The notes under the pieces were generated by a model, which was not told the DNA's origin, did not search any database, and was given only the letters and a program-made list of their open reading frames with translations. Of a stretch of 64,000 nucleotides of DNA, positions 3,065 to 64,000 are shown piece by piece. The stretch is from the NCBI GenBank assembly GCA_002104905.1, contig MCFE01000481.1, positions 1 to 64,000 of the forward strand, read 5' to 3'. Position 1 is the stretch's first letter, and each line of letters begins with the position of its first letter. The translations under genes and the position numbers were made by a program. The stretch comes from Basidiobolus meristosporus CBS 931.73. Taxonomy: Eukaryota; Fungi; Basidiobolomycota.

Positions 3065-3976
3065 TTACATTTCGGCCAATTGATTTTGAACCACTGCCTT
3101 GTGGATAGCATTGCTACTAGAACCTTGCTCAAGTGGCATGAAAATCACCTTGGTTCCCGTGTTCTTGCTCATCGAGCTCAAGGTTTCGAGATAACGGATC
3201 TGCATGGCTGCTGGAGTGTTGAGAATCTCCGCCGCCTCTCTCATCAACTTGGCCGAGTCCACTTCGGCTTGGGCGGAAATCACCTTCGACTCACCGATTC
3301 TCTTTTGGGTGGCTGCGCTGGAAAGCGACTCCTGTAGCTCCTTGGAGAACTCAAGATCCTTAATCAGGATGGATTCGATGGTGACTCCCCACTCTCTGGC
3401 TGGAATATCGATCATCTCACGGATGTCATCAGCAATGGTCTCCCGATTCTCAATACAGTCTTGGAGGACTCGAGTTCCGAGAACCCCTCTGAGTGTGGTT
3501 TGTGTACGCTCAATTAGAGCCTGGCGAACGTTGCCAACCCCGAATAATGATTGGTAAGGGTCCACTACATGATAGTAGACCACCGAGTCGATCTTGATGT
3601 TTACATTGTCCTTGGTCATGATGCGAATGTCCTCGATCAAGGCGATCTGCAACTTGATATCAACGCTATGCAGTTTCTCGGTGAAGACATTCACTGTGGT
3701 CAGACCTGGATCCACACATTTGTAGACTCGGCCGAAACGAGAGATCAGACCAACATAGCCTTGATCCACCTCCTTGTTGGGATTTGGACAGCAGAAACAC
3801 CCAGGAATAGAGCCAAGGGCCCCAAATAAATTTCCCAGGGACTGCATGGCAACCCCGTAGAAGCCCGCGACTGGCTCTGCTGGGATTTCTTTGGCAAACG
3901 ACTTGGACATTGCATGGCTACTTGGCTGAGTGGTCAAGGCCTCAGGCTGAGTGGATGAAGATGGCTTCTTGGACAT
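3065..3976 (-). CDS. Stomatin / SPFH (band 7) family protein
   Basis: Intronless 303-aa ORF with CFCCPNP, TKDNVNIKIDSVVYY, TTLRGVLG, AKLMREAAEIL and AMQIRYLETL stomatin motifs. Confidence 0.92.
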   Translation of the reverse strand: MSKKPSSSTQPEALTTQPSSHAMSKSFAKEIPAEPVAGFYGVAMQSLGNLFGALGSIPGCFCCPNPNKEVDQGYVGLISRFGRVYKCVDPGLTTVNVFTEKLHSVDIKLQIALIEDIRIMTKDNVNIKIDSVVYYHVVDPYQSLFGVGNVRQALIERTQTTLRGVLGTRVLQDCIENRETIADDIREMIDIPAREWGVTIESILIKDLEFSKELQESLSSAATQKRIGESKVISAQAEVDSAKLMREAAEILNTPAAMQIRYLETLSSMSKNTGTKVIFMPLEQGSSSNAIHKAVVQNQLAEM

Positions 3977-25600: not shown

Positions 25601-26159
25601 ACCATCTCACTCCAGGGGTTGCAAAGTCGATTGCAGCTAACTTCGGGATATTCCCTGGAGAAGATGCCCAAGGGGGAGTTCGAAAGGCGAGCCCGGACCA
25701 TGGAGGCCTGGGTCCAGGAGAAATCGGCCAAGCCTGAGGCGTTCTGTGTCCTCCAGCATCTTTGCGAGTTGAAAAGGTGTCGGGATCCGATCCCGGAGGG
25801 GTTCAACCTCAACTTGATGATCACCCAGACCTACTTCACCCTTCTCCACGAGTGCCCGGATCCCACCACCTCCCCTTCGAGCCCGACCGAGCCCTCCGAC
25901 GAATCCCTGGTCCCGGAGAAAGAGGTTATCCAACGCGCGCATCAGTTGATGCGCTCCAGTGGTTCCAAGGTAGTCACTTCCCCCTCGGTATGAATCCCGG
26001 CCTCAACCTTTACTAACCACCCCCACCCCCACTCCCTCCTACTCGTGCCACTCCTTGCAGGAACACACCGACTCCCCGCCACCTGACCCGTCCGGCAAAC
26101 CGGCCCCGGAGCCTGCCATCCTTAACGGTGGGGAGGCCAGCATGTCCGAGCCCAATTAA
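19665..26159 (+). CDS. HIR3: Histone chaperone HIR complex subunit Hir3 / Cabin1, many exons
   Basis: IEQCLELYQKALRFQQ (Cabin1-like N-terminus), YKNYASL, TPR ALEIDPSDSEIWLHVGQLA, C-terminal KWQHRPIYR and RPGKHFAY. Many short GT-AG introns; last exon 26061-26159. The exact start is inferred. Confidence 0.85.
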
Positions 26160-26589
26160 GTGGCCTTCGTGGAGCTCGGATGGGTGCCGAATGTCCGAAA
26201 TCTTGCTCTGTTGTACATATGCCGGCCACTCCAAATCCCACCCAAGCCCATTCCTTTCTGTACCTATCTACACCATAACCCCAATCCCCCGTGATCACTA
26301 ATTAAACGTCCGCTCTCCCTGACAAGTAGTCCTTAAATCAGGCTCTCCATCCAACAACCAGCATGACCCCAGCTGTCAGCAGGACAAGAGGGCGGGGGGG
26401 GAGGCTCTAGAAAGTGTGCTTCCTCATCCCCAATGGATTTATTTCAAGTCTTGAATGTATTTGGATGTATGGGTTTGCCATGCCTGATGGGGCCATTCAA
26501 AGCCCGTAAAATCCCCAAGCAATTTAAAGCACTGGTGGGGAATACAGCAGGCCTGAAAATCAAGTGGGTCTAAGGAGGTGTGGTGATGA

Positions 26590-28044
26590 ATGTACACCAA
26601 TGCACATGATCAGCATGATACCAGCAACTTGACCTGTCTTCCTATCTCCGCACACATCTACTCCATGGGAAACCCCCAAAAGTTGACATTGAGCTACTTG
26701 AGTTCCTTCTTTGCAGCAAAGATACTGCATTCTCTACCTGGGATATTGATTGCTCTACACATATCATCTGCTCATCCTGTCTCTGGACAACTTCTTGATT
26801 TCTCTGGGCCATTGCATGTATTCTATTAGCCACTGCTTCTAATTGCCTCATTAATGCTTTGGTATGAGCTGACAACATACTTGCTAATACTGGTGGTGGT
26901 GATGTTATGGTGGTCATCTTCTGGTCTTGCACTGGAGATACTGCTTAAGCTTTGTAGGCAGCTTGCAGCTCCGCAGAGATTCTCAATTGCCTACTTGACT
27001 TGGAGTCTTAAGAGTCTGCATTAATACCTTCAGTGAGCTCACTGTCAACATGGCCATTTTTGATGTAGCCCTGCTTGTTCTATTGAATGTCAAAGCAAGC
27101 TGTTGTCCAACTGTTCTTCTGCTGCTTCAGCAGTGCAGTTTAGTTTGGAACCAGACAACTTTACTTTATTTTTTGGCAGCATATGTATGGAAGTGAGTCA
27201 AACCATAGGGGAAATAGTGTTACATATATATGTATATGGTGCCACAGCTTTATTTACAATGCTTACTCTGGTGGGTTGTCTTTGAATCTTACATTCATGA
27301 AGGTGCAATGTCTCAAACACAAGCCATAGGGGAAGTAGTGTTACATATGTGTGTATTCCAGGATGTAAATTACCATGTACTTGGTATAGATGAACAGCTG
27401 TCATGCAGCTTACAACATATGTTCCAGAGACTGTCCTGATGCCAGCATGTGTGAGCAGTTGCATGGCATTAATATCAAAGAATGCACCATTGCAAAGTGA
27501 CCAACTTGCAAGGAATCCACTCCCACAGAGGGAAAATCATTTGTTCTCCAGATATATTCCAGTAATACCCCATATAAAGAAGCTCATACAGTCCCCAAAT
27601 ATTGCAAAGCTTTAAAGTACTGCACACAGCATCAGTCAAGAGCAAATATTTTCAATATATTTGATAGCAAACATCACAAACAACTTTGGAGTAAGAGCTA
27701 ATCTGAAGGTATGCATGACCATGCCATTGCCTTGGCTCTTAACAGAATCTCATCAAATAAGTATTCTACTAGCAAATCTGGCTGGCTGCTGATTCTCATC
27801 ACTCTGAATCTGCTATCAATCTCACAGTATCTGATGGTAGTCTCACTGATATCTGGGCCTAAATCTCTGTCCAGCCTGAATAGTAACCTGTATCCATTGC
27901 TGGATGAAACTTATATGATATTCAGCAGGATACTAGAATATGGCAGCTATATCAAAGTGCACATGCTATCCGCATTGGAGAAACTCCAGCCATTAGCCAT
28001 ATAGCTGGCATTTCAAGGCATAGCAGATGATAGTGCTGCCAAAT
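26590..28044. mobile_element. Degenerate mosaic of CACTA/EnSpm-like fragments (copy B, left part)
   Basis: Pieces are homologous to the ORF2 (SMLSAHTKALM) and transposase (HAIALALNRIS..KYSTSKSGW) regions of copies C and D, joined by deletions. Confidence 0.75.
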
Positions 28045-29628
28045 CCCTATGAAAAATAATTTGGTCCTGCAGGTGGATCCAATCCAGATCTGCCATCAGG
28101 ATCCTGTTAAGAGACCATCACAATATCAGCAGCTTGGAATTAGTGACCCTCTTAGCAATCTTATGATGGGATCACAATGGCACTTTGCTAATTTTACTAC
28201 CAAATAAAGTGATAAAACTTGACAAGATTTGATTGGTGCTGTGACAAAAATTGCATGGTATTGTTGCGGTCTTATTGCGCTCTACAACCATTTTAAATGG
28301 ATCTAACCAGCCAGGACATCCAATTGCCTTATATGTCAAGAAACTTGACGGTATTTCAACAGCCTCACAGCAAGACTCTGATGGCATTATTTTGGCAGTA
28401 TGGCGGCCTACAGCTGGTTCTGTATAATGCTACCATACCAATTTATCAAATGGTTTTCCTTTTTCTACCTCCCCTTGTGCAATTCATATATTCTACTGTA
28501 GAATCACCCCTCTTTATTTGCTTACCCACTACCACCTTGGGTATTCCACATATAGTTCCAGTCAAAAAAAACTATGGCCTTGTGCTTACTAACCTCTACA
28601 AACATGCACACCTGCCGCAATTGACATACTTCTATCACCTCAACTTTATGGCTTTTTAGTGTGATACTTGCAAAGTTGCCATATACTGCGCACTGCTGGA
28701 AACATATACATCTTGCAAACATATGCTTGGTTGTTGCCACTTTTGCTATGACCTGTCCTCCATGTGCCAACTCATCACATACATGATGGACTTGAAGTTA
28801 ATATTCTTGATAAGACTGGGATATAGTAGTACCTTCAACTTGACTTGTTTTCCTATCTCTGCACTCATTCACACCATAGGAAACCCCCAAAAGGTGAAGC
28901 AAGGCCAAAAATTCTCTACACACTGTGCAAGATGGAGTAGACAATGGATGCAGTAGTGGCAGAGATATATGTGCTCAGCTTTATGTTTGTAGTATAGCCG
29001 CTCATATCCCATCACAAACTCCGCGCACAACAGCTGTAGATGCATCAAGTTGGCATTTGTGATCCACTTCTGGATAAATATTCCTACAATGTCCACATAT
29101 GGCTCTCTATGCTTCCAATGTACTCTTGGTAGGAATGGCTTCAGAATGCCACTTGAATCAATACATATCCAGGTTATCCAGTCTTTGCATTTGTATTGTT
29201 GCATATGCATATGAATATTGATTGGAGCCCATGAGAAGTACTTAGGGTAGCAGATACTCTGTAATATCTTGCCAATTCTTTCAAATTTCTCCAGTATCTC
29301 AAAGGGCTCATTTAGCTTGAAATGCCCCATGTACAACTTGGTCATCAATATAGGTATATTGTTGAACAGCAAATGCATTGCTCCCAGTGAAAAGCTTTGG
29401 CTCCAACAGATACCCTCTTTCTTAAGTATCTCCGGTTTCCAATTGATTCCATATTCAGGCCTATGGCCTATAGCTTGCCAACTTTGCTGCAATTGCATGC
29501 TGACTTCTGTACATTCTCTCTGCAAAAAGATGATGTTCATAGTGCTGGTGTATGGGTCATAATAATATGTGTGAGTTATTGAGTAAATCCCCTGGATCTC
29601 ACACATTCAACAGCAATACCATCCATTG

Positions 29629-43720: not shown

Positions 43721-45763
43721 TCGGCATTAATTGGCAAGAAATGCAGTTTTTTTTACATGCCTCCCTGTCCGGGGCTTGGGTGGACACTTTTCCCTTTATC
43801 ACTGCCAGGTCTTTCACTGCCACTTTGTCTGAGCGCTTCTTGTAAAGAACTTTGTTCACTCCTGGATAGGTTATGCTCTAACATATCAGTTTTGGCCTGC
43901 TTGTCCCTTGCTAGCACTCTGCTGGCAAACTGATGCTTCTATTCTAATTGTTTTGAGCTCTCAATGGTAGCTGTGATGGGCTCCTGTAAAAGCGGCTGGT
44001 ATTTATCACAGCCAGGTCTATCACCGCTACTTTGACTGGGTGCTTCTTGAGTGGTACTACGCTTTTTCCTTGATAAATGTTGTGCTGGTGCATCTATGTT
44101 TGCCTGCTTGTCCCCTATTGGCACTCTTCCAGATACCTGACATCTCTTTATGCTTGTCTAGAGCTTTTGCCCTGCTTGTAACAGGCTCTTGAGGAAGCCG
44201 CTGGTTATTAACCATGGCACCCTTGTTCTTCTGCCTTTGATAGTTTCTGCTATTCTTAAGATACTTTCTTAGCATACCAATGCAGGCCCAAAATCCATTT
44301 GCCTGTTTGAATCCAGGATAATGCTCATGAAATAAGTCAAGTGCATTCTACTTGGCCTTAAGTTCCTGATGGTCCCATGGTATGCTGGCCTTGAGGTGAT
44401 GAAGTGCTAGACTTCTGACAGCCTCTTGTATGTTAGCCAACTCTTCATTATTGCACTCAACAGCTTCATGGATCTTGAATGTCTTTTGATTTTTAGGCTT
44501 TGGTATGAACACCACATTGTCTCCCTCCCATGCAGTGATAAATTTTTCTGTGGGCTCTATTTTGGGCACTGTTGTTGTGCCTCAAAGACTGTATAGTACT
44601 ACTCTGCTGTTACATCAGGAAATGGCTCAGTTCTTGGCTGTGACATTGGGCTACTTGAGTTCCTTCTTTGCAGCAAAGATACTGCTTTCTCCACCTGAAT
44701 ATTGATTGCTCTACATGTAATTTCTGTTCATCCTGTTTCTGGACTATTTCCTGACTTCTCTGGGCTGTTGCATCTATACTTTCAGCCACTGCACCTAATT
44801 GCTTCATTAGTGCTTTGGTATGAGCTGACAACATACTTGCTAATATGGGTAGTGGTGATGTTATGATGGCCACTTGCTGGTCTTCAACGGAGGGTACTGC
44901 ATTTGTCACATTCCCATCTGGCTGAGCATAACAGTCAGCTTGTGGCTCCGCCAAGGGTCTCAAATGCCTACTTGACTGAGAGCCTGAGGAGTCTGCATTA
45001 TAACCTTCAATAGGCACACTAGACTTGTTCCATCGTACCGTGCCAGGGCGCGCGGCGCAATCCGCGGTCGCAAAGAACGATTGGGCGCGATATTATGGCT
45101 ACCAGAAGACAGGATCGTTCTTGGACGATTTTGCACTATGCGGGTCGATCTTGCACACTATGGCACAATCTGACACGATGAGGTTGGCACGGATGATCGC
45201 GCCAACTTGTAATGTTTGCATCACGTGCGCGATCGGATACTGCTATAATGGCAGGTAAAATCCGGTATTTGGATATGTTTCTTTAATGTAAATGGAAATA
45301 AATGTGTATCACACTATAAACTATACTGATACTTACCATTTTGGTTACCCTCACTCCAATTGGATGGTATCTCAGTGGTTAATTGGTCCAAAAGTATCCT
45401 GAAGCTGGCATCCCCCAATTGGCTCATTGACTACTAAAAAAGCTACCTGATTCGCCAACAAATATCCCATTTTGCCCATTGAGCAAGTATATCCCTGATC
45501 CTAGTAATTGGGCTAGGTGTCATAGCTAGCACGCAAGCGATCGTGTAGGTGCGGAACAGATCCAATTGCTGCACTGCTATTACAGATGACGTATATATAT
45601 GCAGGGTGTTTATTTATAGGGGTTCTGTCTCAAATGTGAGACAACCTTGATATTACTTATATCAAAAATTTGATGATCACTGATTTGCGATGGCTCAATT
45701 TGGATCGCAAAAAAAAAGGGTTGTCGGGATCATTACGAATGTGAGCGATTCAAAGCGATCGCA

Positions 45764-46918
45764 TCATCTTCTCCTGGGTTTTTTTCTCACAGGGATTACT
45801 ACTGAAGCATTTGGTAGTGACTCACTTTGCACACCTATACTACTTCCAGGCTGACTATCATCTTGGCTACTTGTGTATTTGTAGTCAGTATTTTGCCTCC
45901 TAGTTGATGACTGCGATGCTGCAGCTTGGCCGCGCTGAATCGCTCCGACTGAACTAACTGAACCGGCCTGTAGTGCCACGCGCTGACGCGTTCTTTTACT
46001 TGCCAAGGGCTCTGGTGGTTGAGGCACTTCATGTTGGTCATCATCAGTCAGTTCACCAGAAGTAACTCGCTGATGGTTGGGCAAAACGGCACGCACAGGC
46101 GCACCTTGACGCGTTGAGATGGCCCTTGGCTGAGTTTGATGGGATGCCGCATGTTGACGCAACTTGGTCCGCTCCAATGGACTTGTGTCTAAATGAGCAG
46201 TTTGCCGAGTTCTCGTAGTTTTGCTCTGAAGCGCGCACGTTGACCCGACGCGCGTTGACTCGACACGGGGCGTTCTGGTAAAGGTTGTTGGCGTGGTCTG
46301 GACTGACGTGCGCTGGCGCGCTGTGGTTGCAAGAGATGGTAGGGAATCCAGCGAGGTGTGCTGGCGCGATCTGGACGATGTTGCCCGCAGTCTGTATTCT
46401 TCCTCCTGAAGCTCACCATCTGATTCCTCAAGGTATTCACTTACCCTCTGTCTGATACTTTGGAGCTGTTGCCTGGATGAGTCCTGTGTATATTGCTCTC
46501 GGAAGCCACTTAGCTCTACTAATATATCACGTAGTACATTAGTCATTTGAGGCAAAAACTCATTCAAAATCTCTTTGGTTCCCAAGGTTAAGGCACAAAC
46601 GGACGCGTCCGGCCCGTACTGTGCAAATTGTGTGCGAAATTGTTCCCGCGCGGCTTCTTTGTCAAATCCCCTCACTCTCAGCTCATTCTTGATTTCAATA
46701 CTTGTCTTGTTATATATCTTTTTACATACATCGGCTGGCATCTTGATGTAGAACTCATGCTACAGCTTTCTACTCAAATTCTTCCATCTTTGTTGACTCT
46801 CTGAGGTATCTAGTTCTGCTAGATTAATCAGTAGTGCCCAAATATCTGTATGAAGGCTCATCATAGACACTTGGGCCATACTAAAATCATTTGGCAAGAA
46901 CTCAAATGGATCCGACAT
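45764..46918 (-). pseudogene. PHIS accessory ORF (Myb/SANT-like N-terminus, long S/T/R/Q low-complexity tail) with one in-frame TAG at 46762-46760
   Basis: ORFs 46760..47011 and 45764..46741 share a frame: MSDPFEF..QQRWKNLSRKL*HEFYIKMPADV.. RWKNL recalls the Myb/SANT/MADF helix of Harbinger ORF2 proteins (weak motif). Basic C-terminus RKKPRRR. Confidence 0.6.
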
Positions 46919-47370
46919 CGACTTTTCCAGTCCGGACCGCGCTTGTGAGCTGGGGGATGGGTTTTGTCTGGGTTGTACTAAAGATGAGTTGAGGCTTGGT
47001 ATGGGGACCATAGCAACGGATTTGGATACTTATACAGCAGTATATTGGCATCAACCTAGTCTTATATGAAATATATATGAAAACTAATGTGATTGTTGAA
47101 TTTTCCATATATTATGCATGATACATCTCGGATTGCGTTGACACGGATCAGATCACATCAATCGCAGATTTCCTATTTGATTATAGACCTATGATTAAAG
47201 CATCAATAAAAGTACCAAGGCATTGTTTGCGGATGATTTTTGCGACATAATGATGGTATACATGGCAATTGATGGAGATTTAACCATAATGTGTTAAAAA
47301 TCAGATAAATAACGCGGATCGCACCAAATCAATTCAAACCGCCTTTATACAATCATCCATCAATTTTAAT

Positions 47371-48255
47371 ATGACTTACTCATCTGAATGGTCTTTTCTC
47401 ATCAATCCCATCACTACCACTGGATTTCCTTTTGACACACTGGAGGAGATCTATACCAAGTACTGTGGACCATCAACCCCAATCTACTCAAGGAGATCCC
47501 TTGTTAAGCTTCTCTGCTATTACAAGAACTATTGCCCTACAAGGTTTCATCCCACCATCCATGGCAACAAAAGTCCTAGAAGCTTTCATTCCCAGCTGAC
47601 AGCCATGGAGAACCACCTTGCAGAGGGTATGAATGACTTAGAGCAAGCTTGGAATACTAGGTTCAGAAGCTCCAATAGACTTCCATATCCCAGAGTGTTC
47701 AGCAACAGGTTCCATATCAGGAGTATTTTGGATACCTTCCCAGTGAGGATTAACAGACCTTCTAGAGGGCAGAGGCACTTTTATTCTGGCAAGTACAAGG
47801 CACACTGTGTGAAGTTTCAAGCACTATCTGACATTGAGGGCAACATCATCTGGTTTAGTGGGCCATTTGCTGGAAGTAGGCATGACAAAGCACTCTGGGT
47901 AGAGAATCATCCTGAATTCAGTAGAGGGGAGAAATGTATGGCAGACTTAGCCTATATAGGAGAGGATTGTCAGAGATTAGGATGTATTACAGCTTATAGG
48001 AAGCCAAGGAATGGTGTGCTTAGCAGGAAGCAGAAGCTCTACAATGAGATATTTAATCATTTCAGAGTGAGGGTAGAGCACACATTTGGATATCTGAAGA
48101 GATTCAGCATATTGGCAGGTAAATACAGAGGAAAGTCATATATAGGTGAAAACAGCAGGATAGGTAAAATAGTTAAGATACTTATTAATGCACAGTATGT
48201 TCATACAAGAAGACATCCACTGAGAGAAATGTGTCTGGAGCATTATGAAGAGTAA
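47371..48255 (+). CDS. DDE_Tnp_4 (IS5/ISL2-like, PHIS) transposase, intact
   Basis: ILDTFPVRINRP (D), QRHFYSGKYKAH, GSRHD, CMADLAYIG (D), FRVRVEHTFGYLK (E). No stops or frameshifts. Confidence 0.92.
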   Translation: MTYSSEWSFLINPITTTGFPFDTLEEIYTKYCGPSTPIYSRRSLVKLLCYYKNYCPTRFHPTIHGNKSPRSFHSQLTAMENHLAEGMNDLEQAWNTRFRSSNRLPYPRVFSNRFHIRSILDTFPVRINRPSRGQRHFYSGKYKAHCVKFQALSDIEGNIIWFSGPFAGSRHDKALWVENHPEFSRGEKCMADLAYIGEDCQRLGCITAYRKPRNGVLSRKQKLYNEIFNHFRVRVEHTFGYLKRFSILAGKYRGKSYIGENSRIGKIVKILINAQYVHTRRHPLREMCLEHYEE

Positions 48256-51200
48256 ATAAAGCAAGGAAAGCACTATTCTGAGCAACATAAGTAAGATTGA
48301 GTAAAATTACCAGTAACTGTATCATACCACTGGCATCATGGTAGAAATTATAGTGCCAGATACTGCCGTAGAGTGCCAGATTGATCCGGCACTATAAACA
48401 GGCTGGCACTATGTGGCACTATCCAACAGAACAAGTCTACTGTCCACAGGGCCTTTTTTGGATGTAGTCCTGCTTGTTGCACTGAATGTCAAAGTGAGCT
48501 GTTATCCAATTTTTCTTCTGTTGCCATCAATGGTGGGGTTTGGGGTGGAGCCAGACAACTTTGCTTTATTTTTTGGCAGCCTATATATGCAAGTGAATCA
48601 AACCAAAGGTGAAACAATGTTACATATATGTGTGCATGAGGTGCCACAGCTTTATTTATAATGCTTACCATGACTGGTCATCAGTAAATCTTACATTCAT
48701 ACAATGTATGTTCAATTTCTCAAATACAAGACTGTCTTAAGTTCAAAAGAGTATTGAACAAAAAGTGATATAATAGCATTAGGTTTTTGAAGGTCAAACT
48801 GTTTGCCTATGGACAAGGACACTTTAACTCAACACTGTAAGGAAAGAGCAAAAGACCATGTGGCTATTGTGGCAAATCTCTCAGCTATGAAGCATGCAGA
48901 CAGCATAGGAAGTATTACAAGGATCATGGCCAGTGTTTTGCCACCCAAGTCATATTTAGCCATTTATTGGTCACTACTGTGCCATCAGTATCTTGCCAGC
49001 CAGTTGATACTTCTATATTGGCACCTGGCCATCTTTGTCACCTTGCACAAACTGAGACAGGTGAGTTTGTGACGCCTTGAGGCTCACCTCATCATTCTGA
49101 ATATGGCATGCAGAGTGATAGCTCTGGTGAAGAAGGTTCACTGATGTATTTTGAGCCTATCTCCCCTAGCAACAGTACCATGTATGAGCCTGGTCAAATC
49201 CCTACATGCAATGAGGCAGCTCCCATTGAAACAAATGCCAAGGATACTTTATGGATCCAAGTGAGCCCAGTAGTCCATCTACTGGTGAGTGATGCAAAAT
49301 TGTGGCTAGAGAAGTGGTGTGTTTCCACTAATATCAATAATGGGGGCTTTGAGGATTTGTTACACTACTTGCCAAAATCATACCACAATGCCACTTACCA
49401 TGTACATGGTACAAGTGGACAACTCTCATGCAGCTGGCAACATATAATCCTGAAACTGTCCTGATTCTACCATATGTTAACAGTTGCATGGCATTCACAT
49501 CCAAAAATGCTACCATTGCAGCATGTCCAAATTGTCAGGAATCCATCACCATTGGGGGGAAACATTGTTCACACTCCTGGTATATTCCAGTCATACCCCA
49601 TCTGAGGAGGTGGATGCAGTCTGACAAGTATTGCAAAGCTATACAGTACCGCACTCAGTATCAATCAAGCACAAACATATCTCATATATTTGATGGCAAA
49701 CATTACAAACAGCTACGAAGCAAGGGCTACTTCAAAGGTATGTATGACCATGCCTTTGCTTTAGCACTTGATGGATACTCATTAAACAAGTACTCTACCA
49801 GCAAATCCTGCTGGCCATTGATTCTCATCAATCCAAATCTGCTGCCCATCTTACACTATCAGAGCAATAATCTTGTGGTAGTCTCACTGGTATCTGGGTC
49901 TTAGTCATTGTCTAACCTGGATACCTACCTGTATCCGTTGCTGGATGAGTTTTGTATGCTTTCCATCAGGATAGCAGTAAACAGCCATCATGTAAAAGCA
50001 CCTATTATTTTCTGCATTGGAGATACACAGCTATCAGCAAGATAGCAGGTTTTTCCAGGCACAATTGATGGTAGTGTTGTTGAGTGTGTGAGATACAGAG
50101 GATTTACGCCATAACTCACACACATTATAATTAATCAAGCCCCAGCACTTAGAAAATCATATTTCCACAGAGTGAATATCCAGAAGTCAGCATGCAATGC
50201 AGCAAAGTTGGCAAGCTATAAGCAGTTGGCCATAATATGGTATCAATTGGAAACTGGAGATACTTAAGTTAGAGGGTATCTGTTGGAGCAAAAGCTTTCC
50301 ACAGGGAGCAATGCATTTGCTTTTCAACAATATACCTATACTAATGACCAAGTTGTGCATGGGGCATTTCAAGCTAAATGAGCCCTTTGAGATACCAGAG
50401 AAATCTGAAAGAATAGGCAAGATATTATAGAGTATCTGCTACCCTCACTACTTCTCTTGGGCTCCAATTTATATTCATATGCATATGCAACAATACAAAT
50501 GCAAAGACTGGATGAGCCAGATATGTATTGATTCAAGTGGCATTCTGAAGCCATGCCTACCAAGAGTACATTGGAAGCATTGGGAGTCATATGTGGACAT
50601 ATTAGGAATATTTATCTAGAAGCAGATCACCAATGCCAACTTGACGCATCTACAGCTGTTGTGTGAGGAGTTTGTGATGGGATTTGAGTGGCTATAATAT
50701 AAGAATGAATTGGAACACATAGGTCTCTGCTGCTATTGTATCCATTCTCTACGCCATCTTGCACAGTGTGTGGAGAATATTGGGCCTTGCTTCACCTTTT
50801 GGGAGCTTCCTTATGGAGCAAATGTGTTGGCAGATGGGAAGATGGGTCAAGTTGCAGGCACTACCATATCCCAATCTCATCAAGACTACTACCTTCAAGT
50901 CCATCATGCATGTGATGAGTTGGCACATGGAGGACAGCCAGGAAGAGTAGAAAAATACTGAGGACAAATGTGCCCATGGAGACACCAATCCCTATGGCAT
51001 TAAGAAGCTAAGCAGCCCCAATGCATGAGTAATCAGTTAAGTAATGCAAAGTTGGGTTGTGTACAACAAGCAACTAATTTTTATCAGGAAAACTCTACCA
51101 AGGTATGCTGGATTTCTCATGGTCACAAGCTAACTTTGTCACCATTCAATACAAAATTCACACAAACAAAAGCCAGAGCACACCTATCAGGGGGACTAGA

Positions 51201-58115: not shown

Positions 58116-61100
58116 CCCTATGAGTAATTATTGAGATGATCCCATCAAAAGTCTGTCACAAAGTTAATGTCCTGTGACTAAGAGGTACTGATCATGTTAG
58201 GACACCATCTGGAGACCTTTGAAAAATAATTGCACCTCCAGATTTCACAAAAAACTTTGGTCAAAATTTTTCATCACAGCAATATATAAGTGGCTTTTGA
58301 TTGGTTCCCTGCCAATTTACTAACTTTCTGATCCTGGACACTCTATTGCCTCCTATGTTTGTGTGAACTGACTGGCCATTGGCTCTTTTTCATATTCCTT
58401 ACTTCCTGACTCAACTGTTTCTCTTATTTTCATGCATACAAATTGATTTATTTCCATTGAAACTTCAGTTGTACCTCAATTGCCAATTGTATTGATCTAT
58501 GCAAGTCTCTATACCCTACACTAACATTGAGCCCAACCCCACACTCAACAAGTAACTCCATTAAAATCCACCACTCAATAAGTATTTCTGCTGTAACGCT
58601 CTGGTTTCACAACTTTGGCAGGAACCCAACAGCTTTATGCCACTGTTCATTCACTGGTTCCCACACATCCTGGTTTTCAGCCAGCACTACAAGGTCTAGC
58701 ACCTCATCTGCCAGTCTTTGCAATAAGCCCCTGAAATATTCCAGTGCATTTTCTTGAGCACTGCTCTTAAAGAAGTGCTGCAACCTCTTGGTGTGACTAT
58801 TAATGCTCCAAGACTCCACTGAGGCATTGTGCTAGTCTTTCAAGCTCTTGACGTTGTAGCCTTGTCTGTCAGTGGGATCTCCACTCTGTCAACAATGGAG
58901 GCTGTGGATGCTGTGGTAGACAAATTGCCTTTTTCAGCAAACTCATCTACCTTGCTGGAGTGTAGCTTAACTGGCTGCACTTCCAACTCTTGTGAAAACA
59001 GCTGTTTTCCTGTTGGTAATTCTTCTTGGCTATGATGGGATTCAGTCTGTTCCTGGCTTGTGGCATTAATTGGCAAGAACTGCAGTTTTTTTGCATGCCT
59101 CCCTGTCTCAGGCTTGGGTAGACATTTTTTCCTTTACCTTTTCCTCTATCACTGCCAGGTCTTTCACTGCTACTTTGTCTGAGTGCTTCTTGTAAAGAAC
59201 TTTGCTCTCTCCTGGATAAATTCTGCTCTGATGCATCTGTTTTGGCCTGCTTGTCCCTTGCTGGCACTCTTCTGGCAACCTGACATTTCTTTTCAGCTTA
59301 CTTTGAGCTCTCACCATAGTTGTGACGGGCTCCTGTAAAAGTGGCTGGTTTTTATCACAGCCAGGTCTATCACTGCTACTTTGACTGGGTGCTTGTAGAG
59401 TGGTACTACGCTTTTTCCTTGAAAGATATTGTGCTGGTGCATCCAAGTCTGCCTGCTTGTCCTTAATTGGCACTCTTCCAGCTACCTGACATCTCTTTGA
59501 TGCTTGTCTGGAGCTTTTAGCCCTGCTTGTAATGGGCTCTTGAGGAACCCGCTGGTTTTTAGCCATGGCACCATTGTTCTTCTGCCTTTGATTGTTTCTG
59601 CTATTGTTAAGATACTTTCTTAGCATACCAATGCTGGCCCAAAATCTATTTGCCTTTTTGAACCCAGGATAATGCTCATGGAACAAGTCAAGCTCATTCT
59701 GCTTGGCTTTGAGTTCCTGATGGTCCTATGGTATGCCAGCCTTAAGGTGATGGTGTGCTAGACTTCTGACAGCCTCTTGTATTTTAGCTCACTCTTCATT
59801 ATTGCACTTAACTGCTTCACAGATCTTCAGTGTCTTTTGATTTTTAGGCTTTGTTATAAACACCTCATTGTCTCCCTCCCACACTGTGATAGGCTTTTCT
59901 GTGGGCTTTATCTTTGGGCAGTGTTATTGTGCTTCAAAGACTGTATGGTGTTCCTCTGCTGTTACATTGGGAAATGGCTCAGTTCTTGGCTGTGACATTG
60001 GGCTACTTGAGTTCCTTCTTTGCAGCAAAGATACTGCTTTCTCTACCTGATTATTGATTGCTCTACATGTATTATTTGCTCATCCTTTTTCTGGACTACC
60101 TCCTGATTTCTCTGGGCCATTCCATCTATCCTATCAGCCACTGCACCTAATTGCTTCATTAATGCTTTGGTATGAGCTGACAACATACTTGCTAATATGG
60201 GCAGTGGTGATGGTATGATGGCTACTTGCTGATCTTCAACTGAGGGTACTGCATTTGCTACATTCTCATCTGCCTGAGCATAACAGTCAGCTTGTGGCTC
60301 CACAGAGGTTCTCAGTTACCTACTTGACTAGGAGCCTGAGGAGTCTGTATTATTACCTTCAATGGGCACACTGTCCACAGGGCCTTTTTTGGATGTAGCC
60401 CTGCTTGTTGCACCAAATGTCAAAGCAAGCTGTTGTCCAACTGTTCTTCTGTTGCCATCAGTGGTGGGTTTGGTTGAGAACCAGACAACTTTGCTTTATT
60501 TCTTGGCAGCATATATATGGAAGTGAGTCAAACAAAGGGGAAATAATGTTACATATACGTGTGTATGTGGTGCCACAGCTTCATTTATAATGCTTACTAT
60601 CACAGGTCATCATTGAAACTTACATTCATGTAGGTGCAATGTCTCAAATACAAGACTGTATTAAGTTCAGATCAGTATTGACCAAAAAGTGATATAATAG
60701 TGTTACATTGTTGAAGGTCAAGCTGTTTCCCCCATGGACAAGACTACTTTGACTCAACACCGACAAGAGAAGAGAAAAAACACCATGTGGCTATTGTAGC
60801 AGGCCTCTCAGCCATGAAGCACACCAACAGCACAGGAAGTATTGTCACAAGTCTTGGTACAAGAGTTGTAGAGGAAAAGGGAGTTTAGCTAGTATTGTAT
60901 TCACTAAAACTTGAACTGATTTTTATTGGGTTCCAGCAGCTCCTTATATACATTTTGCCAGATCAATTGCTGACTAATTGTATTTCCTAATGTAGGTTGT
61001 GGCTGATGACTCATTTGATTGCATCATCATCACCCAATAAGATCCTACTTGATGTATCTATTTCTGTCTGATAAGGATCTGCTGATTCATTTGCTGACTA

Positions 61101-64000
61101 ATACTACTGATTTCATAGATAATACTGATATACTGATAACCTAAGCATATACTAATTGATTTGACTAAAACTGATCTAACTTAAACATTCAAGCGGCAGA
61201 TCATAACAGTATTACAATGATCAACAGTTGATACTGCTATATTGGCACCTGGCCATCTTTGTCACCTTGCGCAAACTGAGTCAGGTGAGTTTGTGATGCC
61301 TTTAGGCTCACCTCAGCCTTCTGAATATGGCATGCAGAGTGATAGCTCTGATGAAGAAGATTCACTGATGGATTTTGAGCCTATCTCCCCTAGCAACAGT
61401 ACCACATATGAGCCCAGTCAAATCCCTTTATGCAATGAGACAACAACCATTGAAGCAGATGCCAAGGGTACTTTATGGAGCCAAGTGAGCCCAGTAATCC
61501 ATCTGCTAGTGAAAGATGTAATATTGTGGCTAGAGAAGTGGTGTGTTTCCACCTAATATCAGAAATGGGGGCTTTGAGGATTTATTACTACTTATTGCCA
61601 AGATCATACCAGGATGCAACTTACCATGTTCATGGTACAAGTGGACAACCATCATGCAGCAGGCAATATATGATCAAGAGACTGTCCTGATTCCAGCATG
61701 TATTAACAGTTGCATGGCATTCACATCCAAAAATGCTACCATTGCAACATGTCCAAATTGTCAGAAATCCACAACCATTGAGGGAAAACATTGTTTACAC
61801 TCCAGATATATTCCAGTCATACCCCATCTGAGGAAGCTGATGCAGCCCAACAGATATTGCAAAGCTATACTGTACCGCATTCAGTGTCAATCAAGCACAA
61901 ACATATCCCATATATTTGATGGCAAACATTTTCAAACAGCTAAGAAGCAAGTGCTACTTTGAAGGTACATATGACCATGCCTTTGCTTTAGCACTTGATG
62001 AATTCTCATTAAACAAGTACTCTACCAGCAAATCCTGCCGGCCACTGATTCTCATCAATCTGAATCTGCCGCCCATCTTACAATATCAGAGCAATAATCT
62101 GATGGTAGTCTCACTGGTATCTGGGTCTAAACCACCATCCAACCTGGATAGCTACCTGTATCTATTGCTGGATGAATTTTGTATGCGTTCCAGCAGGATA
62201 ACAGTAAATGGCCATCATGTAAAAGCACATATTATTATCTGCATTGGTGATACCCCAGCCATCAGCAAGACAGCAGGTTTTTTGGGGCACAATGGATGGC
62301 ATTGCTGTCAAATGTGTGAGATCCAGGGGACTTACTCCATAACTCATACACATTATTATTACCCAAACACCAGCACCAAGAACATCATCTTTCCACAGAG
62401 AGAGTGTTCAGAAGTAAGCATGCAATGCAGCAAGGTTGGCAAGCTATAAGCCATTAGCCAGAATATGGAATCAATTGGAAACCAGAGATACTTAAGATAG
62501 AGAATGTCTGTTGGAGCAAAAGCTTTCCGCTGGGAGCAATACATTTACTTTTAAGCAACATCCCTATACTGATGACCAAGTTGTACATGGGGCATTTCAA
62601 GCTAAATGAACCCTTTGAGATTCCAGAGAAATTTGAAAAAATTGGCAAGATATTACATAGTATCCGCTACCTTAATATTCATACGCATATGTGACAATAC
62701 AAATGCAAAGACTGGATGAACTGGATATGTATTTGTTCAAGTAGTGTTCTGAAGCCATTCCTACCAAGAGTACATTGGAAGTAGTGTGAGTCATATGTAG
62801 ACATTGTAGGAATATTTATCCAGAAGTGGATCACCAATGCCAACTTGATGCATCTACAGTTGTTGTGCAAGGAGTTTGAAATGGGATTTAAGTGGCTACA
62901 CTACAAGCATAAAGCTGAATGCATAGATATCTTGCCGCCACTGTATCCATTCTCTACTCCATCTTGAATGGTGTGTGGAGGAATATCAGGCCCTGCTTCA
63001 CCTTTTGGGAGTTTCCTATGGAGCCAATGTGTTGGGAGATAGGGAGATGGTCAAGTTGCAGGTACTACCATATCCCAATCTCATCAAGAATATTACCTTC
63101 AAGTCCGTCATGGATGTGATGATAGGCACATGGAGGACAGCTAGAACAAGTTGGAAAATACTGAGGACAAATGTGCACATGGAGACACCTATGCCTATGG
63201 CATTAAGTAGCTAAGCAGCCCCAATGCATAGGTAATCAGCTAAGTAATGCAAAGTTGGGTTGTGTGCAACAAGCAACTAATTCTTATCAGGAAAACTCCA
63301 CCAAGATATGCCAGATTTCCTGTGGTCACAAGCCAACTTCTACCCCATTCAAAATGGAATTCACACAATCAAATGCCAGAGTGCACCTATAAGGGGGACT
63401 AAATTCTAGCAGGGAGAAGCAATATATTGGCCAAATACCAAGAAGTTCTTTGCCAATATTCAGGAGGTATTCATGGCAGAAGTGGCAACAACCAAACATA
63501 TGTTTGCAAGATGTATATGCTACCAGCAGTACAATGTATATGGCAACTTTGCAAGTATCATACTAAAAAGCTGTAAAGTTGAGGTGATAGAAGTATGTCA
63601 ATTGCAGCAGGTGTGCGTGTTTGTAGAGGTTAGTAAGCAGGAGGCCAAAGTTTTTTTTGATTCAAACTATATGTGGAATACCCAAGGTAGTAGTGGGTAA
63701 GCAAATAAAGAAAGGTGATTCTACAGGTGAATATATGAACTGCACAAGGGGAGGTAGAAAAAGCAAATACCATTTGGTAAATTGGTACGGTAGCATTATA
63801 CAGAACCAGCAGTAGGCTGTCCTACTGCCAAAAAATGCCATCAGAGTCTTGCTGTGTGGCCGTCAAAATACCATCAAGTTACTTGCCATATAAGGCACTC
63901 AGAAGTCCTGGCTGACTGGATCCATTTAAAATAGTAATTGAGTGCTGAAAGACCGCAACAGTACCATGCAAAATTGTCACAGCACCCATCAAAAATTGTC
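58116..64000 (+). mobile_element. CACTA/EnSpm-like copy D (most complete; runs off the window end)
   Basis: CCCTATGAG terminus; ORF2 remnants on minus at ~58400-60350; transposase remnants on plus at ~61320-63700 (ALALDEFSLNKYSTSKSCRPLILINLNLPP, CIGDTPAISKTAGFLGHNGWHCCQMCEIQG). The window end matches the subterminal region at 28210-28260 in reverse. Confidence 0.85.
60843..61208. mobile_element. Solo LTR (366 bp) with 4-bp TSD GTAT
   Basis: TGTCAC..ATAACA flanked by GTAT; absent from copy C (GGAAGTATTACAAG); homologous to 53432-53800. Confidence 0.88.

Follow-up and report, generated by a model that had tools for sequence, protein, structure and literature searches.

How can a transposase gene lack every CpG dinucleotide and nevertheless remain intact and rich in arginine, within an element whose other half is full of CpG? 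The question is raised by a 64,000-nucleotide (nt) stretch of the genome of the early-diverging fungus Basidiobolus meristosporus CBS 931.73 (contig MCFE01000481.1, positions 1 to 64,000), the whole of which we call the window. At positions 47371-48255 the window carries the open reading frame (ORF) of a transposase that belongs to a complete DNA transposon of 3,418 bp, itself inserted in a block of decayed transposable elements (the TE block, 26.5-64 kb; the transposon is excluded from the statistics of the block). The answer that we favour, with a probability of roughly 0.55, is that CpG-directed mutation acting on repeats, combined with survivor selection on the protein, gave rise to the CpG-free transposase.

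A transposase gene without CpG

The features with which the argument begins are the following.

47371-48255, plus strand: transposase ORF, 294 amino acids (aa), DDE_Tnp_4 domain, no CpG, 28 arginine codons of the AGR type (AGA or AGG)
47341-48366, plus strand: CpG-free zone of 1,026 nt, reaching from 30 nt ahead of the ATG through the ORF to 111 nt past the stop codon

The ORF extends over 885 nt from ATG to TAA and matches the Pfam families DDE_Tnp_4 (E 8.7e-24) and DDE_Tnp_1 (E 5e-10). Both the frame and the catalytic triad are intact, as an earlier note on this DNA had proposed from the letters alone: D121 (47731-47733), D172 (47884-47886) and E236 (48076-48078) occupy invariant columns in the alignment with relatives. 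That note had also reported the complete lack of CpG and some 28 arginine codons confined to AGA and AGG, and the counts agree with it. With 172 C and 201 G, the ORF would be expected to contain 39.1 CpG and contains none, the number of GpC (36) being normal; the arginine codons, which account for 9.5% of the protein, number exactly 28 (15 AGA, 13 AGG, no CGN), and the codons TCG, CCG, ACG and GCG are all absent.

Could this pattern reflect nothing more than a preference for certain codons? In a synonymous-codon permutation of the ORF, the kind of control that the earlier note had called for, 12.8 CpG are expected at codon junctions and zero was reached in none of the 5000 permutations; in the actual gene, not one of the 66 codons that end in C is followed by a codon starting with G. 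Because the junction CpGs are missing as well, the avoidance acts on the dinucleotide rather than through codon preference or host usage, and codon preference is thus ruled out as the cause. Furthermore, the host genes of the window, with CpG observed-to-expected ratios (o/e) of 0.65-0.86, use 45 CGN to 38 AGR arginine codons, and the second ORF of the same transposon uses 19 to 17, so that the exclusive use of AGR cannot be ascribed to the habits of the host.

The lack of CpG is far beyond chance when measured against the left arm of the same transposon, the host genes or the codon permutation. Against the surrounding TE block it is unexceptional: 14% of the 885-nt windows of the block are free of CpG, and the CpG-free run 47341-48366 is the 8th longest in the window. 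What is exceptional in this setting is the intact, arginine-rich frame.

The transposon and its family

The transposon and its parts are delimited as follows.

45021-48438, plus strand: complete DNA transposon, probably of the Pangu group of the PHIS superfamily (PIF/Harbinger-ISL2EU-Spy; PIF/Harbinger-like), 3,418 bp, delimited by its flanks and by empty sites
45018-45020, no strand: left copy of the ACT target-site duplication, a single ACT at the empty paralogue
48439-48441, no strand: right copy of the ACT target-site duplication, a single ACT at the empty paralogue
45021-45045, plus strand: left terminal inverted repeat, its first 10 nt (AGACTTGTTC) a perfect match to the right end
48414-48438, minus strand: right terminal inverted repeat, paired with the left end
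45764-46741, minus strand: long part of the second ORF (ORF2), 325 aa, an orphan rich in serine, threonine, arginine and glutamine, with no significant Pfam match
46760-47011, minus strand: N-terminal portion of ORF2 (83 aa), which a TAG at 46760-46762 severs from the 325-aa portion in the same frame
47012-47370, no strand: divergent intergenic region and putative promoter between ORF2 and the transposase, CpG-normal

The boundaries are fixed by two kinds of empty site. The sequences that flank the insertion (44002-45020 and 48439-48916) are uninterrupted in a paralogous repeat at 59351-60843, where the site of insertion (about 60370) shows one ACT only, and in 26 contigs from this genome 45017 and 48439 are adjacent. 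The inverted ends are perfect over 10 bp (AGACTTGTTC and its complement) and then imperfect, at 77%, up to about 25-30 bp; subterminal GGCACTAT/ATAGTGCC repeats begin at 48350, ahead of the right terminal repeat, and their motif is common to the right end of a sister family that is described below. When the contigs of a DNA run of the same genome (X1) are mapped to 44500-49000, a span that takes in the transposon and the flanking host repeat, 32,574 align, including 6,239 at an identity of at least 99% (contigs of the host-repeat flanks are included in these counts). Given these thousands of near-identical contigs and the empty sites, the family is young and present in high copy number.

The placement in the Pangu group, a probable one, derives from the features of the transposon itself. 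According to the passages on Pangu in PMC4482050, this group of the PHIS superfamily generates a 5'-ANT-3' duplication, has inverted ends of 11-40 bp that start with AG (or GG), averages about 3,487 bp and carries two ORFs, namely a DDE transposase without any other domain and a motif-less second ORF. The transposon described here fits this profile in its ACT duplication, AG ends, length of 3,418 bp, two divergent ORFs (transposase on the plus strand, ORF2 on the minus strand) and lack of a motif in the second of them. The nearest named relatives of its transposase, and the only ones found, are bacterial transposases of the IS5 type from cyanobacteria. The transposon differs in that early-diverging fungi are not among the hosts given there, and the passages on Pangu in that source are silent on CpG (PMC4482050). 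Two other assignments were considered and rejected: a strict PIF/Harbinger element is at odds with a duplication that is ACT rather than TWA and with the lack of any Myb, SANT or MADF match in ORF2 (E up to 10), and a domesticated host gene is ruled out by the high copy number, the terminal repeats and the target duplication.

The left arm keeps its CpG

The part of the transposon to the left of the transposase (45022-47370, counted from the second base of the element) has 107 CpG in 2,349 nt, that is, an o/e of 0.91, distributed in dense patches separated by deserts. The long part of ORF2 has 53 CpG (o/e 0.87), and its G+C content (GC) is 0.50 compared with 0.42 for the transposase; the 187 nt that precede the ATG of the transposase contain 6 CpG where 5.1 are expected.

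This arm decides one issue. The earlier note had reasoned, from the products to be expected of CGN codons, that decay after insertion cannot account for the transposase ORF, and the left arm leads to the same conclusion. Since the transposon sits in an older, CpG-poor repeat and its own left arm, a part of the same insertion, is still CpG-rich, decay in situ is excluded.

The same arm bears on one alternative, namely that the ORF is a piece of the CpG-poor TE block that happened to retain an open frame. The frequency of CpG-free windows in the block is what could be adduced for such an accident; set against it are the intact DDE triad, the arginine content and the 21 of 28 arginine columns conserved with the sister family, as well as the perfect ends, the target duplication, the CpG-rich arm and the multitude of near-identical contigs of the element. 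The CpG-rich left arm, the conservation of the sister family and the split that the two families share refute this explanation, and the probability that we leave to it is practically nil.

ORF2 is an orphan in every search that was made. Neither of its parts shows a significant match to a Pfam family, even with E values up to 10, and no relatives were found among 1.84 billion representative proteins; the 83-aa part is homologous to an 86-aa gene fragment upstream of the transposase in one contig of the sister family (L003). In the copy of the window ORF2 looks broken: the in-frame TAG at 46760-46762 (minus strand) corresponds to tryptophan in that contig, and the change would be TGG to TAG, a transition outside the CpG context.

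Several repeated motifs are found in the left arm. In the centre of ORF2 (45931-46376) a CpG-bearing 15-nt motif close to CGCACNTTGACNCGN occurs four times, at 46100, 46148, 46234 and 46249, together with three more repeat pairs at a spacing of 48 nt, and GATCGC or its reverse complement GCGATC is present at 8 positions of the left arm and putative promoter. CpG-bearing motifs and repeats of this kind make up much of the CpG of the left arm and could represent peptide repeats or cis-acting sites. A GGATCGCRCC block in the putative promoter is common to the transposon and the sister family. At 47058, 47123 and 45848, about 99% of the contig depth from the same genome differs from the window, indicating changes private to this copy; the first two are G-to-A changes in a TpG context, equivalent to CpA-to-TpA on the opposite strand.

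A sister family with the same split

For how long has the transposase been without CpG? The comparison with homologues draws on one sister family (proteins P0001/P0241, 294 aa; Logan contigs L001 and L003-L005 from four public runs, among them ERR14656578 for L003, ERR14127507 for L004 and ERR14127509 for L005) and on one CpG-rich metagenomic homologue (L002). The protein collection contains no close relative besides this sister family, which is at 63% amino-acid identity. A word search with the single protein yielded three proteins only, a profile search drifted to cyanobacterial insertion-sequence transposases and added no eukaryotic relative, and a scan of metagenome contigs for homologues found none.

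The coding sequence (CDS) of the sister transposase, also 885 nt long, has one CpG in L001 and none in L003-L005, and the 667 nt upstream of it in L003 have 24 CpG (o/e 0.96). The CpG-free zone of L003 measures 1,034 nt and is the counterpart of the 1,026 nt of the window. Between the copy of the window and L001 the proportion of synonymous differences (pS) is 0.77, which amounts to saturation, and that of nonsynonymous differences (pN) is 0.23, from which strong purifying selection on the transposase protein follows. Thus, the recoding at the level of the lineage that the earlier note had envisaged is borne out by a relative with saturated synonymous sites, 0-1 CpG in the CDS and a CpG-normal upstream region, and the CpG-free state is an old property of the lineage.

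The arginine codons tell the same story. The two families share 21 of the 28 arginine columns, with AGR in each, and where arginine is exchanged between them, it is mostly for lysine (AAR/AGR) and never for cysteine, tryptophan, histidine or glutamine. In the metagenomic homologue (protein P0002, 37% identity) the CpG o/e is 1.52 and arginine is encoded by 30 CGN to 2 AGR codons; at the six arginine columns that are conserved out to this protein, it has CGN and both Basidiobolus families have AGR, a switch of codon family at conserved residues. The earlier note had named a handful of CpGs in the ORF, AGR-only arginine usage throughout the host genes and an equal lack of CpG in homologues from species lacking 5-methylcytosine as findings that would speak against it; what we find is a count of zero, host genes that use CGN freely and an outside homologue rich in CpG.

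Might the transposon then be a recent mosaic that combines a CpG-rich left arm with a transposase module taken from a CpG-poor source, either a different genome or an old lineage under methylation? The orphan status of ORF2 and the difference in GC between the two genes lend themselves to such a scenario, which we nevertheless regard as very improbable. The sister family is split in the same way, and the fragment upstream of its transposase is homologous to the N-terminus of ORF2; because the synonymous sites of that family are saturated, the split must be old and actively maintained rather than a recent mosaic. Furthermore, in the copies of runs from 2013 (organism B) the identity of 81-88% extends over both arms, so that the arms have long travelled together. 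Transfer from a CpG-poor donor was considered separately and is ruled out by the CpG-normal flanks and by a state common to a deeply diverged sister.

In the 2013 runs (X5-X7) indels of 1 nt lie inside the transposase, at 47655, 47725 and 48053-48057, and it is such indels, and not CpG transitions, that disrupt the transposases of these copies.

A global alignment of the 667 upstream nt between the two families shows 48% identity, which is near random, with one conserved CpG pair and the GGATCGCRCC block; the notion that each CpG of the left arm is functional finds no support in such an alignment.

CpG sites of repeats are hypermutable

What happens to CpG in the repeats of this fungus can be read from several comparisons. 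Among L003, L004 and L005 a single one of the 885 coding positions differs, and in the 294 nt of upstream sequence in which they overlap, 8 of the 12 CpGs of L003 are lost in L004. The CpGs at -24 and -16 from the ATG, present also in the more distant L001, have become TG in L004 and CA in L005 and, therefore, were hit independently at the same sites; within each of these contigs both changes fall on one strand. Among the left-arm positions listed for run X1, seven transitions reach a minor share of at least 8%, and six of these are at CpG sites; old paralogous repeats that are 88% identical overall have only 4 of 19 CpG sites in common. Thus, CpG in the repeats of this genome is converted to TpG or CpA much faster than other sites change.

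The process behind this loss is probably the deamination of 5-methylcytosine (5mC). B. meristosporus encodes CDCA7F, a protein that a survey of 180 species found nearly always together with HELLS and DNMT1.

The favoured explanation and its weak points

The favoured explanation involves a short chain of events. CpG in repeats would be turned into TpG or CpA, most likely by deamination of 5-methylcytosine upheld by a DNMT1-type system. Synonymous and junction CpGs would vanish from the transposase through mutation bias alone, and lineages with CGN arginine codons would take hits that replace arginine with cysteine, tryptophan, a stop, histidine or glutamine and would drop out, so that only genes with AGR codons survive, that is, through survivor selection on the protein. 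The outcome would be a gene without a site for CpG-directed mutation, which remains intact in copies whose CpG-bearing parts decay. We infer that the AGR-only state goes back to survivor selection and not just to mutation bias, and the CpG-free state may well help the element to persist.

Several observations weigh against this explanation. The left arm and ORF2, which have the same history as the transposase, keep a CpG o/e of about 0.9, and 34 of the CpGs of ORF2 could be removed synonymously and are kept, so that the split is not explained by a CpG mutation pressure acting evenly on the element as a whole. The 111 non-coding nt after the stop codon are free of CpG although about 3.6 would be expected, and the sister family is likewise CpG-free beyond its stop (103-133 nt across both families, 3-5 CpG expected), which is not what a protection confined to the ORF would lead one to expect. 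Few CpGs of the left arm are conserved in position between the families (in what is a poor alignment), and the direction of the switch between CGN and AGR is unrooted. Finally, sites outside CpG differ at 10 of about 270 flank positions among the sister contigs compared with the single difference in the CDS; this gap may come from selection or from a collapse of the repeat in the Logan assembly, and the comparison of sister contigs thus provides no clean neutral rate.

The stretch beyond the stop codon also bears on the wording of the earlier note, according to which the lineage had been selected to remove every CpG. This goes too far: such selection is inseparable from mutation pressure on this part of the element, and the downstream stretch, too, lacks CpG.

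Could the split be a by-product of regional methylation? Under this scenario, only the transposase unit and the right arm are methylated in active copies and the left arm is protected, in the manner of a CpG-island promoter next to a methylated gene body; the exclusive use of AGR would be an equilibrium and would confer no advantage on the element. The extent of the CpG-free zone, which in the two families begins 16-31 nt before the ATG and takes in non-coding DNA up to 103-133 nt after the stop, is what such a regional process would produce, and the turnover of left-arm CpGs without net loss resembles unmethylated DNA, as do the o/e values of the host genes, which are presumably unmethylated. 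Yet the CpGs of the left arm and upstream region are lost in other copies, which argues against a general protection, and AGR is found at 27-28 of 28 and 25-26 of 26 arginine residues in the two families, whereas essential arginines tend to keep their CGN codons when mutation bias is combined with ordinary purifying selection, as in vertebrate genes. Furthermore, we know of no fungal mechanism for such a partition of methylation within one element. We consider this scenario conceivable but rather unlikely.

Another possibility is that selection removed the CpGs so that the transposase stays transcribable within a methylated compartment. The transcribed part is wholly free of CpG, the 3' untranslated stretch included, as would be expected if selection acted against a methylation that impedes the elongation of transcripts, an effect reported in Neurospora. 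Such an escape from methylation is decidedly unlikely: the putative promoter and left arm keep 107 CpG, 6 of them just ahead of the ATG, so that silencing could still take place, and ORF2, which is normally the second intact ORF of PHIS elements, is CpG-rich. The sequencing runs in which the element turned up are all of DNA, none of them of RNA. For the same reason two other expectations of the earlier note are not supported. It had called the gene methylation-proof, whereas the element, with its CpG-bearing promoter region and arm, remains a target of methylation; it had also suggested that the gene may stay expressed, to which the CpGs of the promoter and arm are to be opposed, as well as the premature TAG in ORF2 of this copy. 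CpG-directed mutation would find no site in the transposase, judging by its sequence, and escape of expression from methylation does not follow from this.

A last, tentative and rather unlikely reading turns the split itself into an adaptation, a design with two compartments that combines a CpG-free enzyme gene with a methylatable, CpG-dense arm comprising the promoter, ORF2 and the arrays of CpG motifs.

Genomic setting

The surroundings of the transposon in the window are as follows.

1-26.5 kb: gene compartment, CpG o/e 0.6-1.08, GC up to 0.57
1-26.5 kb: host genes encoding Band_7, thaumatin, HECT and 2-oxoacid dehydrogenase E2 proteins
3068-3976, minus strand: Band_7 host gene, 100% identical to K493DRAFT_321673
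26.5-64 kb: TE block of 37 kb, CpG o/e 0-0.17, GC about 0.40, TpG and CpA in excess
49428-49901, 61916-62446 and 44002-45020 / 59351-60372: stretches of the repeat that received the insertion

The boundary between the two compartments is abrupt and lies at about 26000-27000. Every 885-nt window of the gene-rich part contains at least 17 CpG, and the TE block, minus the transposon, has an overall CpG o/e of 0.072; the one exception within the block is 45.0-47.3 kb, where the o/e is 0.8-0.97. The insertion landed in a decayed CACTA/EnSpm-type element with fragments of Transposase_21, present in at least two copies in the window that are about 89% identical and both already CpG-poor.

The remaining ORFs of the block are short, poor in arginine and enriched for tryptophan, cysteine, histidine and glutamine, which is the footprint of CGN decay. 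One of them, of 245 aa (28872-29606, minus strand), has 10 tryptophans, 12 cysteines, 14 histidines and 13 glutamines compared with 6 arginines, a composition as expected after decay of CGN to TGN or CAN.

Relation to known systems

Loss of CpG from methylated repeats is textbook knowledge, and CpG depletion with a bias to AGR is known for resident transposable elements. Human L1 and many vertebrate viruses are depleted of CpG and encode arginine with a bias to AGR, under the combined action of methylated-CpG mutation and purifying selection. There the depletion is partial and extends over the element from end to end; in the present transposon it is complete, but limited to one half of an otherwise CpG-normal element.

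The closest fungal parallel concerns the repeats of Pucciniomycotina, which undergo hypermutation at TpCpG resembling repeat-induced point mutation (Horns et al., 2012, PMC3318451; Horns et al., 2017, PMC5381629). For the retrotransposons of Microbotryum, whose mutated copies suffer a loss of fitness, shedding of the target sites was proposed, with the suggestion that selection may favour the shed variants, and was not demonstrated there (PMC5381629). In both systems fungal repeats mutate from C to T in a CpG context, and the transposase described here looks target-shed; unlike the basidiomycete retrotransposons with their TpCpG context, this is a DNA transposon in which one gene is free of CpG and the rest bears it. 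Host hypermutation in a defined context, which target shedding presupposes, is evident in the o/e of the TE block, the 4 of 19 shared CpG sites and the 8 of 12 lost ones, with the caveat that Logan contigs of repeats underlie part of this evidence; the context is missing despite a composition that would predict it in the transposase part only and not in the element as a whole.

Synonymous recoding against CpG has also been carried out deliberately, in the CDS of engineered low-CpG or CpG-free transposon vectors such as the low-CpG Passer transposon (PMC11840574). Vectors of this kind differ in being man-made, against TLR9 signalling or transgene silencing in mammalian cells. Our search of the literature found neither a natural CpG-free transposase nor any element described as partitioned in this way, nor a 5mC map for Basidiobolus.

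Implications

What stands out here is that one essential gene of a transposon is without any target site and has been kept so over a divergence that saturates synonymous sites, in contrast to the rest of the element. The transposon thus offers a countable system, in an early-diverging fungus, for asking whether genomes outside Dikarya defend themselves by CpG-directed mutation of repeats. Could transposons become immune to mutation of this kind in the course of evolution, and what keeps the other half of this element CpG-rich? If the two-compartment design were real, the defence of the host would be reduced to reversible silencing, as irreversible mutagenesis could not damage the enzyme gene, and copies that are silenced or decayed in the arm would keep a working transposase for later bursts. 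For the annotation of this genome, the finding carries a warning: its CpG-poor TE genes are not necessarily dead.

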